Sequence record: NC_048673.1
Direction: 5' to 3' (one strand)
DNA length: 64,000 nt
In this document: positions 2,690 through 34,431 of the stretch, in pieces
Position numbering within the stretch: position 1 is the stretch's first letter
Layout of the letters: the number at the start of each line of letters is the position of its first letter
Translations under genes and position numbers: made by a program
The notes under the pieces: generated by a model
The model's database searches: none
What the model was told of the DNA's origin: nothing
Seen by the model: only the letters and a program-made list of their open reading frames with translations

Positions 2690-2986
2690 ATGAAGATCCG
2701 TTTCAAGTCAGAACAGCATCTACGCGATTTTAAAGCTGCATCGGTAGAAAATTTGGAAATCGCGGATTTTATGAGAATGCACCCAGTTGAAGTAGTTAAG
2801 ATCCATGGTCATTACTACATCGAAACAGACATTCTTGATTGTACTCTCATCCTTGAATCCGAACACGATTTCTTTGATTGGATTGAAGATGATCCCAAAA
2901 CCCTTTTTGATATCATGTTAGAAAAGAAGGCTGAATACGACAAGGCTTTCAACGACTACATCCAATCGGTTAAAGAAAACAGTTGA
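2690..2986 (+). CDS. MKIRFK-family paralogue 3 with C-terminal coiled coil
   Basis: MKIRFKSEQHLRDF...ENLEIADFMRM; tail LFDIMLEKKAEYDKA. Confidence 0.75.
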   Translation: MKIRFKSEQHLRDFKAASVENLEIADFMRMHPVEVVKIHGHYYIETDILDCTLILESEHDFFDWIEDDPKTLFDIMLEKKAEYDKAFNDYIQSVKENS

Positions 2987-3289
2987 CCATCTATTAGGTT
3001 ATCTGTATATTGGTACTTGTCCCACTATCAAAAGGAAATTTAAATGGATATTCGTACCATCTATTACTCATTCGTTGATAAAGGTTATACCAATCCAACT
3101 CATAACCTCTTTGTTCCTGTTGAGAATCTTTCCTCTACCAATCACAAAGTAAAAATGTCAGTTGCTAATACCAACTCAAATCTGGCCTTTACTTACGAGG
3201 ACGATTCAGGTATTCTCAACGTGTACATTGATGGGGAAGTAGATTTCATTCCCAACGGTAAAGCCCAAGATAATAAAGGAGAATAAATT

Positions 3290-3661
3290 ATGACAGATAT
3301 TATGCGTATCCGTTTCCTCAGCGAAAAGGACAAAGAACATTTTGTATCCCGCAGTGTACACGCAAACACCCACATCGCCAAACATATGGGTATGGATTGG
3401 AATCGTGTATCATTCAATGGTCGTCGTTGGTCTCTGGTGGATGAGAACAATAAGGATGTGGTTATTGGTGGTATTGATGTTGCCACTACTATCCTTCCTT
3501 TGGAATATCAATTTTTCGAATGGGATATTCTCCCAGTAGAAAATAAACCTTCCATTAAATCTCTCTGGGATATTGCACAACAGAAGAAAGCAGAGTATGA
3601 TGATGCTATGGTTGAATACAACAAAGCAGTAATGGAGAAGCTTGATGAAAGTGCGATTTAA
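3290..3661 (+). CDS. MKIRFK-family paralogue 4 with C-terminal coiled coil
   Basis: MRIRFLSEKDKEHF...ANTHIAKHMGMD; tail LWDIAQQKKAEYDDA. Confidence 0.75.
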   Translation: MTDIMRIRFLSEKDKEHFVSRSVHANTHIAKHMGMDWNRVSFNGRRWSLVDENNKDVVIGGIDVATTILPLEYQFFEWDILPVENKPSIKSLWDIAQQKKAEYDDAMVEYNKAVMEKLDESAI

Positions 3662-4227: not shown

Positions 4228-5147
4228 ATCATCAAACGATCATGAGAGGGGTAAAATGCACTTTTTTGGTGCATTTTCTTTTTATACAACCATCAAAACA
4301 TTTTCTCTCTATCCCTTGTGGTATAAGGGATTCTGTTAATATTCTTTCACATTATTTCATAACTTTTCATATCTGTTAACATTCTTTCATATTTTGATAA
4401 TGTTTGGTTCTTAAATTAAAAAGTTTGATTCTGGAACAAAAAAGTGTGGACACACATTAGGTGATGTAGTACCATGTTCTTACTGACTGATTGGAGATAG
4501 ATATGAAAAACATTCGTGAAATTGCTGCTGAAATGAAAACCCTGCTGAACTCCCGTGGTTATGGTATCACTTCTGTTTTTGGTATGTATCTTGATAACAA
4601 TGCTATGATGGTTATCAAAGGCCGTGAGTTGGAAAAGGTAGCGCGTGACTTTGCGTTAGTTCGTGGTATTCATTCTATTGTTATCGCAGAAGAACTTTGC
4701 TATGATAATGTTGACTTTGAAGACCCGACTAGTGAAGCTGAGTTGGTTCGTGTGTTGAAGTGCTGCATTGACTATGTGGAGTAAGATATGGAATGGGTTA
4801 TTGGTGTTGTTGTTGCTCTGGTGTGGTGTTTCTTGATGTTTGCTTATATCACTGAAAACAAGTTTAAGAACGAGCGGTATTCTATTCGCGATTGGTTGAA
4901 GTATCATGGATTTGGTGTTCATATTCATCGCAATGACTTTCTTCTTGATAGTTGTCAAATGGTTCGTCTTGGTGGTATATCTCAATGTAATAAATGTCTT
5001 TCTTGGGTTGTGTACTGGAAACTGTACAATATCCGTCGAAAGAAATTGAGTCGTGAAGATACTATTAAGAAACTGAATGCGTTGGTTAATGGTATGGTTG
5101 TTGAGCGTGTAGAGCGTGAGAGTAAGAAAGATTTTTGGAAGGATTAG

Positions 5148-5456
5148 ATGAAGAATCTCATTGCTTTATTGGCTGTGATTGGTTTGGTTGGTTGTGTTCC
5201 CAAAGTAGTTCATCAAGAAACTTATCGAGATACTGTTGTTGTTACTGAGTTTGTGAAGAGGCATAAGCGACAGCGGATTAAGGTACGAACATCTGATGGT
5301 ATTTTGATTAATCAATATGTTGCTAAACGCTGTAGTGGGTGTTATGCTTATAAGGGTGATAAGTTCTCTGTGACTGTTACCAAGAAAACTTGGGATGATG
5401 GTGATGTTACTTATAGTATCAACCGTTATGAGACTAAAGAATTTTTGAGGAAATGA
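5148..5456 (+). CDS. Predicted lipoprotein, CxGCY family copy 1
   Basis: Signal peptide with lipobox LVG-C; motif CSGCYAYKGDK. Confidence 0.8.
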   Translation: MKNLIALLAVIGLVGCVPKVVHQETYRDTVVVTEFVKRHKRQRIKVRTSDGILINQYVAKRCSGCYAYKGDKFSVTVTKKTWDDGDVTYSINRYETKEFLRK

Positions 5457-6046
5457 TTATGACTGCTGCTGAATTGGTAAAGGCCGTTCGTGAGAAAGAA
5501 CAAGCTCGTGTAGAACTTCGTAAGGCTATCGTGCAAGGGATTTATGATGAGACGGTTGAATCCATGCTCGATCAAGATGAATTAGAAACAGACCTCAGTA
5601 TTTATAATATCGAGCGCATTTGTAATACTGAACTTGATGGGGTTATGTTCTATGATCTTATCCGTGATGACATTATCCCGTTGTTTGTTAAGAATGGTTT
5701 CTCTGCTGTTTGGAATGAGGATGAAGGCGATAACCGTATTTTGATTTGGGCACCTATTGGAGAATAATATGAAAGTTATTGACTATATCAAAATGTATCC
5801 TAACGCTTATGCATGTGCTTGTGTTGAACGTTCGCATACTACTCCCAATTATGTTAACTATCTTAACCATTGTGCACTGGCTACTTTTATCAATGCAGGT
5901 AGTTGGGATAAGGTTGAGGATTTGATTAACAGCTCTGATTACTATAAGCCTCTTGAGGGTGTTGTTCTTGTTGCGGCTGATTATATGGATGATGACAATG
6001 ATGATCGCTGGAAAGCTTATGATGCATATCAATCAGGGGAAATTGT

Positions 6047-6358
6047 GTGAAAGCACTAATTGTTGGTCTAACTTTGTTATTGGTTGGGTGTGTGCCTGTT
6101 TCTGTGGTTAACACTTTTAGCGTTAGGGAATCAGTAACCGTTATCAAATGGGATCCTGTCAATCGGTATATTAGCTTTGTTTCTGATAGTGGATTGGTAG
6201 TGACTAACGTTTACATCTGGGACGCATGTAAGGGGTGTTATTCTATCATTGGTGATAAGATGAATGTTACTATCACCCAACAGGTGAAAAGCGACAATAC
6301 AACCGAACTTGTTGTAGATCCAAACGAGGTCGGAAAGCAGATGAGAAAGTTTAAATGA
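6047..6358 (+). CDS. Predicted lipoprotein, CxGCY family copy 2
   Basis: Lipobox LVG-C; motif CKGCYSIIGDK. Confidence 0.8.
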   Translation: MKALIVGLTLLLVGCVPVSVVNTFSVRESVTVIKWDPVNRYISFVSDSGLVVTNVYIWDACKGCYSIIGDKMNVTITQQVKSDNTTELVVDPNEVGKQMRKFK

Positions 6359-6593
6359 AGAAAAAATATAGTCAGAAAGAGATAAACGCGCTACTTAAAC
6401 TTGCTAAGGGTATCAAGGCCGGTGACCAGATTGAAGCAACTGACAAGATGCTCTCTGACTTGGGTAAGATTTCTTTTCCATTGTTTCGTGAGCCTTGTAC
6501 TGGTAAAATGTTTTTTGCGTGGAGAGGCTGTTCATATGTATTCAAAGACCGTATTAATGAGATGCTTGATTCACTGAGAATGGAATAAAGTAG

Positions 6594-6635
6594 TTGCATC
6601 GGTCTTTGGTTATGGTATTATATCTACATCGAAAC
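6594..6635 (+). promoter_or_regulatory. Early promoter cassette, exact 42-nt repeat copy 1
   Basis: TTGCATCGGTCTTTGGTTATGGTATTATATCTACATCGAAAC: -35 TTGCAT, extended -10 TGGTATTAT; identical to 7089..7130. Confidence 0.85.
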
Positions 6636-7088
6636 AAAGGAGACTGTTATGAAAATCGAATGCGAATTCAAAGCCGTACCCAACAATACCAAGTTTTACG
6701 TTCTTCGTTATGTTGGTGCACCAACCAGTGACTCTATTAGTTTCTTCAAGGGTGATTCTAATATTTGTCATGATGTATATGGTGAGTGGAAAACCCCGGT
6801 CGATTTTGATAACACTCATCCATGTTGGTATTTTAAGGATTGATAATGAATGTAATTGTACGCGAAACGAATCATGGGAAGGATTTGATCTATTCCCATG
6901 ATAATGGATTTACTCGCCACGTTGTTCAAATTTATGATGGTGGTTACGCTTGTTATCTTAATGAGAGTCGATGCTTTAAGAGAAAAACACACGAGGTGAT
7001 GATGACTCAATGTGGTATTGATCCAAAAGAGATTAATCCTTTACCATGGAACTCTGATGCATATTATCGAAATTGTGTGATTTAGTAC

Positions 7089-7130
7089 TTGCATCGGTCT
7101 TTGGTTATGGTATTATATCTACATCGAAAC
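7089..7130 (+). promoter_or_regulatory. Early promoter cassette, exact 42-nt repeat copy 2
   Basis: Identical to 6594..6635. Confidence 0.85.
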
Positions 7131-7155
7131 GAGATACCTAACTGAGGAAGAGATT

Positions 7156-7503
7156 ATGAAACACGTACTGATTGCTCTGGTTGCTTTGTTCGTTCTGGTT
7201 GGTTGCAAAAAAGAAGTTAGCGAAGTTTCTTTCGTTGATACTGTGACTGTTACCAAGTTCGTTAAGAAGCATTCCGATAGCCAGCGTGTGAGCGTTACCA
7301 CTTCCGAAGGTATCGAGATGAACAACCACGTTGTTTCTCAGAAGGGTACAAACTGCCTTGGTTGCTATGCTAAAGCTGGTGATAAGCTGGAAGTCACTGT
7401 TAAGAAAACTACCTATGAGGATGGTTCTGTTCATTACTCTTTCAATAAATCTGAAATGAAAACCGCTCTGAAACTGAACCGTCGTAACAACTATGCCAAC
7501 TAA
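7156..7503 (+). CDS. Predicted lipoprotein, CxGCY family copy 3
   Basis: Lipobox LVG-C; motif CLGCYAKAGDK. Confidence 0.8.
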   Translation: MKHVLIALVALFVLVGCKKEVSEVSFVDTVTVTKFVKKHSDSQRVSVTTSEGIEMNNHVVSQKGTNCLGCYAKAGDKLEVTVKKTTYEDGSVHYSFNKSEMKTALKLNRRNNYAN

Positions 7504-7971
7504 GGGGGTAATGATGAAACTAATTGAACTGATTGAGATTGTTAGTAGTGGACAGTCTGAGGTTTTGGTTGACCAATCTGGCTTTCATAATGTCTTAACC
7601 AAGCTTGGTATTAATGATTGTGTGTTTGAGGACTTCATCGAAGCAGAAATTTGGGTAGAGAAAAACATTGTTCTTCATAAGGTGGATGGAGTTATCTATC
7701 TGTTCTATAAGGATTTGTATCTCGCTAAATGGAATTCCTATTGCAATCAATCTGGTTGTAATCTGTGTAACCGCGCTACACTTGAAAGTAAACAAAACCG
7801 TAACATTTCTAAGTTCATGTATGACCTGATGGAACTGTATATGGACAAAGATGTTTATAAACAAAATCCATTCAAAAACTTGGAAATGAATGACGAAATT
7901 TAGTTGACGGGGTATCCCATTTATGGGATACTCTTTTTGTCGATTGGGACATAACTATTGAGGAAGAAATC

Positions 7972-8826
7972 ATGACTATGAACAAATGGGAATCTCAAGG
8001 TGTTGGTAAGGCTCCGTTCCGTTGTGTTGGTATGTTCAAGATGCCTAACAAGGATACTGCAACTATGCAGGATTATGCGGCACTCCCTCAAGGTTATGGT
8101 GCTGGCTCCTGTCATGTGTGTGGTACTGGTATCATTTACAACTACATGATCCACGATGCAGACGGCCAGAAATTCGTGGTTGGTTGTGAGTGTGTGAACT
8201 ACACCAACGACACAACTCTGATTGATGCTGTCAAGGCCGAGCGTAAAGCTTTCAACAACGCACAGAAGGCCGCAGAAACTCGCAAACGCAACGAAGAGGA
8301 ACGAGCGCGTAATGGTGGTCTAACTGATAAAGAAATGGCTCAGAAGGCCGTACAGGACGAATGGGACGCAAAGCGTAAAGTTTATCGTGAGACCAACAAA
8401 GAACTGTTCGATGCTGGGTTGGCTACTGGTTACGAATGGATTGAAGAGATCATCGAATCCTGTATCCATTACTGCTCTATGTCCGAGGCCCAAAAGACTG
8501 CAATTGAAAACGGTATTGCTGACTTTGAGTTCAAGAAAAATCAGTTGAATGAATTCTTTGGTGCTGTTGGTGATCGGGTGAAGAAAGTAGAACTCACCAC
8601 CACTTTTGAGATGTGTGTTAAACAGGCTCAATATTACGGTGATTATGATGTTTACCTCGCTGTGTTGATTGACGCGGAAGGTCGGACTTACAAATACATG
8701 GGTTCGTCTTTGAAGTCCATCCCAACCAAGGGTTCTACCGCTGTTATGTCATTCTCTATCAAGGCTCACGAAGAATATAAAGGGGTCAACCAGACTGTAA
8801 TCCAGCGCCCCAAAATGCACGATTGA
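7972..8826 (+). CDS. Putative nucleic-acid-binding protein: N-terminal Zn-finger, coiled coil, C-terminal OB-like domain
   Basis: CHVC...GCEC; charged helical middle; FFGAVGDRV...HEEYKGVNQTVIQRPK tail typical of phage OB-fold proteins. Confidence 0.55.
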   Translation: MTMNKWESQGVGKAPFRCVGMFKMPNKDTATMQDYAALPQGYGAGSCHVCGTGIIYNYMIHDADGQKFVVGCECVNYTNDTTLIDAVKAERKAFNNAQKAAETRKRNEEERARNGGLTDKEMAQKAVQDEWDAKRKVYRETNKELFDAGLATGYEWIEEIIESCIHYCSMSEAQKTAIENGIADFEFKKNQLNEFFGAVGDRVKKVELTTTFEMCVKQAQYYGDYDVYLAVLIDAEGRTYKYMGSSLKSIPTKGSTAVMSFSIKAHEEYKGVNQTVIQRPKMHD

Positions 8827-33757: not shown

Positions 33758-34135
33758 ATGGTAAGATACAAGGCAATTATATTTGGGATTCTTCTTATTT
33801 TGGTTGGTGGGTCTACTTGGTATATGTTCAACAAGATCGAATCACAGGCAATAACAATCGGAGAGATGACCCAACAACTAGAAACAATGACATCCAAATT
33901 ATCCGCCATGGAATTGAGTATAAGCGATTTCAAACAACAGTCCAGCGAGTATAGTCAGACGGAAGAGAAATCGAATAGAGAGCTTTCTAAGCGCATTGGT
34001 ACGCTGGAATCTAATGCTAGTCGCGGTAAGGATGCAATAGACAAGAAACCTAAGCTAGTAGAGAAGATAATCCAGAATGATTATGAAGAGTTTGGAAGCA
34101 GAATGGATTGCCTTACTCTGGGGGAATGTAAATGA
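33758..34135 (+). CDS. Inner-membrane spanin (Rz-like; T4 pseT.3 equivalent)
   Basis: N-terminal TM plus long coiled coil; 4-nt overlap with a lipoprotein gene. Confidence 0.8.
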   Translation: MVRYKAIIFGILLILVGGSTWYMFNKIESQAITIGEMTQQLETMTSKLSAMELSISDFKQQSSEYSQTEEKSNRELSKRIGTLESNASRGKDAIDKKPKLVEKIIQNDYEEFGSRMDCLTLGECK

Positions 34136-34431
34136 AAAAAATTCTAATTATGATGTGTATAGTGGTTCTTGCTGCATGTTCAACACCACCGAGACCAGAC
34201 CCGGTATTAGTGTTTCATCCAAATAGACCAATCCCTGTAAAAACTTATATTCCTAAATGGACTGTTATTAAGGAAGGTGAAACAACTTATGTCGGGATGA
34301 CATATGAGGACAGTTTAAGGTATAGGGCTTGGCTTGAAAAAATAGGTGTTTATATAGATTCACAAAATAGAATGTTATGTTCTTATAGAAAGGATCTGAA
34401 AGAACCACAATGTCAAAAAGTCCCCAAATAA
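34132..34431 (+). CDS. Outer-membrane spanin lipoprotein (Rz1-like; T4 pseT.2 equivalent)
   Basis: Lipobox LAA-C, Pro-rich linker, YVGMTYEDS and C-terminal Cys pair. Confidence 0.8.
   Translation: MKKILIMMCIVVLAACSTPPRPDPVLVFHPNRPIPVKTYIPKWTVIKEGETTYVGMTYEDSLRYRAWLEKIGVYIDSQNRMLCSYRKDLKEPQCQKVPK

Follow-up and report, generated by a model that had tools for sequence, protein, structure and literature searches.

Few tools are known by which lytic phages remodel the outer membrane from inside. Phage-encoded lipoproteins are one of them, and structural understanding of these has so far been limited to the Llp/Cor type (T5; phi80, T1, N15). From its binding site on the periplasmic side of FhuA, Llp of phage T5 refolds the FhuA outer loops, a precedent for receptor jamming by small phage lipoproteins from within the periplasm (PMC9586334). 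Rz1-type o-spanins are likewise phage outer-membrane lipoproteins. In this study, three small genes, gp248, gp251 and gp255 (here LP1, LP2 and LP3), were analyzed in a 64,000-nucleotide stretch of record NC_048673.1 (the window). The window corresponds to positions 124001-188000 of the 230 kb genome of Aeromonas phage AS-zj (NC_048673; Straboviridae, Emmerichvirinae, Ceceduovirus), and its bases 4400-8000 were 100% identical to that phage. Coordinates are those of the window unless stated otherwise. A reading made from the letters alone (the sequence-only reading) had proposed that the three genes encode a diversified family of early lipoproteins that block receptors, as Llp and Cor do, or sense the envelope. 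The data support LP1-LP3 as exported, lipid-anchored, folded binding-type domains.

LP1-LP3 resembled Llp/Cor in being small phage lipoproteins with a signal peptidase II (SPase II) lipobox, encoded outside the lysis cassette and presumably transcribed by host polymerase. Llp/Cor proteins sit on the periplasmic side of the outer membrane and contain one intramolecular disulfide (PMC9586334); both features are predicted for LP1-LP3. Unlike Llp/Cor, LP1-LP3 had a predicted oligonucleotide/oligosaccharide-binding (OB)-like barrel plus a helix, two to three paralogs per genome and no adjacent gene for a receptor-binding protein. They also differed from the Rz1-type, being predicted folded barrels without a proline-rich part or a partner gene for an i-spanin. 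The o-spanin of AS-zj was found at 34132-34431 (+ strand), encoding a proline-rich protein of 99 amino acids that matched PHROG 812 ('Rz-like spanin') with E 4e-33. Because the true o-spanin lies there, LP1-LP3 are not the lysis lipoprotein. Their own matches to spanin PHROGs (E 0.1-0.22) were at signal-peptide level, and the o-spanin assignment was rejected for them.

The three open reading frames (ORFs) were located as the sequence-only reading had described, and each is an annotated coding sequence labelled 'hypothetical protein'. All are on the + strand. LP1 occupies 5148-5456 (102 amino acids; mature part 87 amino acids, isoelectric point (pI) 9.7), LP2 occupies 6047-6358 (103 amino acids; mature part 89, pI 7.9), and LP3 occupies 7156-7503 (115 amino acids; mature part 99, pI 9.2). 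Each N-terminus consisted of M-K, 11-13 hydrophobic residues and then the L-V-G-C lipobox that had been read from the letters. The signal peptide of LP1 covers residues 1-15 and the lipobox cysteine is Cys16. The corresponding residue is Cys15 in LP2, which has a GTG start overlapping the gp250 stop, and Cys17 in LP3. A lipoprotein pattern was defined as an N-terminal positive residue, a hydrophobic core and [LVI][ASTVI][GAS]-C within the first ~25 residues. When all possible starts were considered for ORFs of at least 40 amino acids in the 230-kb genome, only seven matches were obtained, so the lipobox of the three genes is not a chance feature. The seven included LP1-LP3, the o-spanin and one further clear lipoprotein outside the window. 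The lipobox was retained in 30/30 family and superfamily members examined, with Gly at -1 in every one. LP1-LP3 are thus predicted SPase II substrates with a Sec signal peptide and a lipobox. The +2 residue was Val in LP1, Val in LP2 and Lys in LP3; as none has Asp at this position, sorting to the outer membrane is predicted by the E. coli Lol rule. At genome positions 106088-106342 (+), 17.9 kb before the window, there is a clear lipoprotein ORF of 84 amino acids with L-S-A-C, which is unrelated to LP1-LP3.

The proposed paralogy was confirmed. Pairwise identity was 50% between LP1 and LP3 (E 4e-30), 34% between LP1 and LP2 (E 1e-14) and 26% between LP2 and LP3 (E 2e-9). All three gave full-length matches to PHROG 9091 ('unknown function'), with residues 1-102 of LP1 (E 2.9e-50), 1-103 of LP2 (E 4.5e-41) and 1-108 of LP3 (E 1.3e-45) aligned to the 106-position profile. 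A profile of the three copies searched against the 230-kb genome recovered exactly LP1, LP2 and LP3. The results indicated that LP1-LP3 are true paralogs. The ORFs between them belonged to other PHROGs and were unrelated and of unknown function, in agreement with the interleaving noted earlier. PHROG 9091 and the UniRef entries named 'Lipoprotein' in Emmerichvirinae (65p233, 65p229, and gp272 and gp279 of phage CC2) represent the same family as LP1-LP3.

The family was found by tblastn in 20 phage records, all of them Aeromonas T4-like phages (Ceceduovirus and Ishigurovirus) with two to three copies each. A word search of 5.8 billion proteins gave 12 clusters, all from phages of these two genera and carrying the automatic UniRef name 'Lipoprotein'; phage CC2 was the sole match of a pattern search of IMG/VR. 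A pattern search of bacterial and archaeal genomes representing 185,579 species found no close relative. The maximum-likelihood tree of the mature parts resolved four orthogroups: LP1 (including 65p233), LP2 on a long branch, LP3, and LP4. LP4 consisted of 65p229, avDM6_072 and Aswh_1_383 and was sister to LP3 with support 84/84. Since phage Aswh_1 holds LP1, LP3 and LP4 in one genome, the duplications are older than the split between Ceceduovirus and Ishigurovirus.

The ratio of nonsynonymous to synonymous substitution rates (dN/dS) was calculated from codon alignments of AS-zj against six or seven sister phages. It was 0.07-0.42 for LP1, 0.20-0.38 for LP2 and 0-0.23 for LP3, similar to or below the values of neighbouring genes. 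LP1, LP2 and LP3 are real genes under purifying selection. That they are non-functional gene calls or decaying duplicates, an idea with nothing more than the lack of annotation on its side, is effectively refuted: each dN/dS comparison gave a value well below 1, the frames were intact in the 20 phages and the lipobox was conserved. LP3 was the most conserved copy, with 96.5-100% identity across Ceceduovirus, the isolates of which come from A. salmonicida, A. hydrophila and A. dhakensis. LP2 was the fastest-evolving copy, with 82-92% identity across the genus. LP2 is also accessory, being absent from phage CC2, where its slot is taken by an unrelated ORF of 94 amino acids that is not a lipoprotein (3167-3451 of the CC2 stretch). 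In a metagenomic contig, 287 bases at 6050-6338 in the same slot were swapped for 330 others. The LP2 slot is a replacement hotspot.

The three-dimensional structures of LP1 and LP2 were predicted by using AlphaFold2. The LP1 model, built from a 15-sequence alignment, had a mean predicted local distance difference test score (pLDDT) of 87.4 and a predicted template modelling score (pTM) of 0.74, with low confidence in the signal peptide only. Its elements were strands at residues 20-36, 42-47, 53-59, 72-82 and 87-91 and a helix at 93-101, and the predicted fold was an OB-like small barrel of five strands plus a C-terminal helix. The model of LP2, the most divergent copy, was built from a 24-sequence alignment (pLDDT 88.0) and showed the same order of elements. 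Both models matched independent BFVD models of other orthogroups with template modelling (TM) scores of 0.73-0.88, as well as the 'Lipoprotein' of Pseudomonas phage VCM and the unnamed entry G4KK15 (121 amino acids), which we take to be g076 of Yersinia jumbo phage phiR1-37. Because the LP1 and LP2 models were concordant and cross-matched those of other orthogroups, a single fold for the family is supported, and the beta-rich body and shared fold expected from the letters were reproduced in the models.

Foldseek gave no match of the model to the PDB at E <= 0.001. In exhaustive structural alignment, the top matches were S1, cold-shock and other OB domains, with Z 5.0-5.9 and a root-mean-square deviation of ~3 A over 62-70 residues. 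The best Z values, 5.9 (NusA S1) and 5.5, were below the confidence range of the tool, according to which Z of 5-6 may reflect merely a common arrangement. OB, S1 and cold-shock domains share the five-stranded small barrel with the LP fold; they are cytoplasmic nucleic-acid binders, whereas LP proteins are exported and have the extra C-terminal helix.

The sequences CSGCYAYKGDK in LP1, CKGCYSIIGDK in LP2 and CLGCYAKAGDK in LP3 were present as the sequence-only reading had quoted them. The CxGC..GDK motif therein held for LP1-LP3 and did not hold for the family as a whole: 3/13 aligned members had N-W-[YF]-Y, with G-Q replacing G-D-K. The only invariant positions in the 13-member alignment were Met1, Leu, Gly and Cys of the lipobox, one Val and two Gly. 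The LP4 orthogroup has N-W-[YF]-Y where C-x-G-C stands and no Cys outside the lipobox. In the model, CxGC was positioned in the loop that joins strands 3 and 4. With two cysteines three residues apart in this loop and the protein exported to the oxidising periplasm, the suggested periplasmic disulfide is plausible.

An exhaustive profile search of 1.84 billion representatives gave 16 matches only. These included distant lipoproteins of 100-118 amino acids with P-K-H-F-Y-V-D-L, Y-V-S-K-H-C and a Cys right at the C-terminal end; two further matches were repetitive proteins unrelated to the family. By hhalign, the family aligned with the distant lipoproteins over 97 columns with probability 99% and E 8e-18, which indicates that the latter are true relatives of LP1-LP3. 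The first Cys of CxGC aligned with a conserved Cys of these relatives, whose second Cys is C-terminal and not at +3. Since this Cys follows the helix, the end of the helix is implied to pack against the strand 3-4 loop. LP1 retained the superfamily motif as Y-V-x-K-R-C, followed by the second Cys at +3. Most of the motif was lost in LP2 and LP3, and P-K-H-F-Y-V was degenerate in the Aeromonas clade.

CxGC looks like a structural disulfide whose partner moved in evolution and which is dispensable in some members, rather than an active site, because LP4 has no pair and the second Cys of the distant relatives is C-terminal. CusF and the CxxC of NlpE are models for redox or metal sensing, and CxGC could correspondingly be a redox or metal site by which the periplasmic copper or redox state is sensed or buffered. 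The spacing of the cysteines is typical for such sites, and the weak fold matches included CusF (E 0.13) and molybdate-binding Mop domains (Z 5.7). This explanation was considered very improbable. The pair is missing in all three LP4 proteins, the distant relatives keep the first Cys only plus the C-terminal one, and a second Cys that is lost or relocated speaks against a CxxC that catalyses a reaction or binds metal.

When the combined alignment was used in a word search, 75 clusters were obtained, none (0) of which had a name or a Pfam domain. The cluster contexts inspected were phage-like, with runs of small same-strand ORFs near PhoH, ClpP, ribonucleotide reductase, SLT, NUDIX or tRNA synthetase genes. 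The named members were phiR1-37 g076 and an ORF of Ralstonia phage RsoM2USA. The LP family is part of a larger lipoprotein superfamily without a name, which occurs in large lytic phages that infect Gram-negative bacteria. The members from jumbo and other large phages (phiR1-37 g076, RsoM2USA and metagenomic contigs) were similar to LP proteins in length, lipobox and predicted barrel. They keep the first Cys, with a C-terminal disulfide partner as against one at +3 in LP1-LP3.

LP1-LP3 matched no Pfam or NCBIfam model, and sequence searches of Pfam, NCBIfam and the PDB gave noise at the level of the signal peptide. In the ESM Atlas, only unnamed clusters were obtained; the nearest named families, DUF5818 and DUF3221, scored 0.81-0.82, which is chance level, and were rejected. 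MliC is a lysozyme inhibitor with a larger barrel, ill-suited to the five-strand model. A match of one distant relative to the MliC model of NCBIfam (E 0.017; score 15 bits, cut-off 168) was regarded as noise.

The 42-nucleotide (nt) sequence that had been described as a duplicated promoter before the third copy occurs twice without a mismatch, at 6594-6635 and 7089-7130, where 0 copies were expected by chance; it is a putative promoter. The duplicate extends to 47 nt with one mismatch. The first extended copy (6589-6635, +) lies upstream of gp253 and contains TTGCAT at 6594-6599, a 16-nt spacer and TG-n-TATTAT at 6613-6621. The second (7084-7130, +) lies 26 nt upstream of the LP3 ATG. The element resembles an extended -10 sigma-70-type site, and the second copy is likely the promoter of LP3-gp256. 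It was passed over by a simple promoter scanner, as TTGCAT matches 3/6 of TTGACA and the threshold was 4. A third, looser copy at genome position 121265 kept both hexamers and the downstream block and had a different spacer.

The two repeats bracket the 495-bp gp253-gp254 cassette. In phages AS-szw and P19, the cassette was precisely missing and one repeat copy remained between the gp252 end and the LP3 leader, so the repeat marks the cassette borders. Both copies were present in phage CC2. From its coverage pattern, vB_AdhaM_G2 probably also has no gp253-gp254 cassette. The cassette appears to have been gained or lost by recombination between the promoter copies. PeSL elements of T4-type phages show such behaviour at indel borders (PMC2839356, PMC4122927). 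The hexamers of the repeat fit one published PeSL early-promoter consensus, TTGYVH-N17-TAWWAT (PMC4122927). The repeat differed from PeSL in its spacer (16 nt versus 17) and in having no stem-loop; the stop codon of the upstream gene abuts the repeat.

LP1 and LP2 lie in the tightly packed gp246-gp252 unit, 3' of a terminator-like hairpin at 4253-4277. Downstream of the hairpin, a weak sigma-70-like site was found at 4447-4475 (+; TGGACA, 17 nt, TACCAT; 9/12 matches). This site is a candidate start of the unit and suggestive only, as such sites were no more frequent than in shuffled sequence. No T4-type late promoter (TATAAATA) was found on the + strand between 4000 and 8200. Since sigma-70-like promoters are present and late promoters absent, the LP genes would be early or pre-late. 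Between the hairpin and the gp246 operon there is also a 22-nt direct repeat (4332-4353 and 4372-4393; 91% identical), and the hairpin and this repeat may be regulatory. The public-run contigs over 4400-8000 comprised relatives and the LP2-slot replacement.

LP1-LP3 are tentatively interpreted as envelope binders that jam receptors or transporters after the Llp/Cor precedent, a reading that we hold as possible at less than even odds. The proteins would be transcribed from sigma-70-type promoters, hence early or pre-late, then exported and acylated at the N-terminal Cys. The Lol rule would place them in the inner leaflet of the outer membrane, exposed to the periplasm, and a local disulfide between the CxGC cysteines would stabilize the strand 3-4 loop. 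Each paralog would bind a separate envelope component from the periplasmic side. If outer-membrane receptors were jammed in this way, superinfecting phages would be excluded and released progeny would not be wasted on cell debris. Under receptor jamming, several targets would follow from the two to three diverged copies kept per phage. No homologs of T4 Sp (Spackle) or Imm were detected in the AS-zj genome by single-sequence tblastn-type searches and Pfam PF14373 at E <= 1. An exclusion role in AS-zj is therefore left without an assigned gene, which was counted in favor of jamming.

Several results weigh against receptor jamming. No homology to Llp or Cor extended past the signal peptide: matches to the Cor profile, PHROG 1119, had E 0.012-0.22 and covered mainly the signal peptide (LP1 1-21, LP2 1-18, LP3 1-49), and hhalign against T5 Llp aligned 18 signal-peptide columns with probability 39%. 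Neither search showed homology of the mature domain, and the LP mature part is 87-99 amino acids versus ~60 in Llp. The predicted fold matched solved structures only as generic OB, S1 and cold-shock barrels, which is uninformative on function. No signal of positive or diversifying selection was found at the whole-gene level between LP1-LP3 and sister phages. The paralogs are diverged, as the word 'diversified' had implied; the orthogroups are conserved rather than diversifying. No RNA data for AS-zj were found among public runs. The sole family or superfamily member with transcript data is phiR1-37 g076 (2974-3339 of the stretch examined), which was classed as late with normalised counts of 159, 243 and 498 (Table S2, PMC4848604). 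It ends the g073-g076 unit and is cotranscribed with the virion protein gene g074. Phages whose hosts are unrelated share the superfamily motif P-K-H-F-Y-V-D-L and Y-V-S-K-H-C with strong conservation. Such conservation argues for a conserved ligand instead of variable receptors, and it fits a conserved envelope ligand at least as well as the analogy with Llp.

LP1-LP3 may accordingly act on the envelope by binding a conserved component other than a receptor, one that many Gram-negative hosts have in common; candidates are peptidoglycan, lipopolysaccharide or lipid, tethers of the Lpp/OmpA type and a hydrolase of the periplasm. In that case their effect would be on the integrity of the envelope, on the timing of lysis or on a tail lysozyme (Spackle-like), with no specific receptor blocking. 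Besides the motif, purifying selection and the near-identity of LP3 in phages from three Aeromonas species point in this direction. Ligand binding is typical of OB-like barrels, and the missing Sp and Imm homologs suit this function as well. Most of the conserved motif is lost in LP2 and LP3, however, and two to three diverged copies are hard to explain for one ligand. A conserved ligand was judged a serious but somewhat unlikely explanation. It is rather unlikely, at about one chance in a few, that the wider group forms an unrecognised superfamily of OB-like outer-membrane lipoproteins of T4-like and jumbo phages that constitutes a new structural class of periplasm-side effectors, for example by jamming unrelated to Llp, each paralog disabling a different host outer-membrane protein.

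The late class of g076 and its unit with a virion protein also raise a late or virion-associated role, in which the LP proteins would be accessory to lysis and release or associated with the particle. This role appears improbable. The AS-zj genes are part of a hyperplastic block, made up of small ORFs on the same strand and adjoining goF-like genes, in a region with sigma-70-like promoters and no late ones. The o-spanin is a different gene, and a lipid-anchored periplasmic protein is unlikely as a virion part.

The family had already been catalogued, as PHROG 9091 and UniRef 'Lipoprotein', though it was uncharacterised. The present analysis adds its fold, a history of four orthogroups, the link to jumbo phages, the movable disulfide and the duplicated promoter as a cassette border. 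Next to Llp/Cor, the LP proteins represent a second family that is unrelated in sequence, confidently modelled, present in two to three copies per genome and has homologs in Yersinia and Ralstonia jumbo phages. Receptor blocking, if true, would widen the exclusion repertoire and help to find the receptors recognised by those Aeromonas phages that now serve in aquaculture biocontrol. If the ligand is a conserved envelope component, an LP protein would be a compact probe for that component. Either reading is cheaply testable.

Directly before LP1, gp247 (4788-5147, +) encodes a protein of 119 amino acids in which a transmembrane helix at the N-terminus precedes a basic, Cys-rich domain that is probably cytoplasmic. 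In phage 65, 65p235 (the gp247 ortholog, 47% identity) and 65p234 (the gp250 ortholog) lie directly upstream of the LP1-type gene. This arrangement could be a conserved module or merely inherited synteny.

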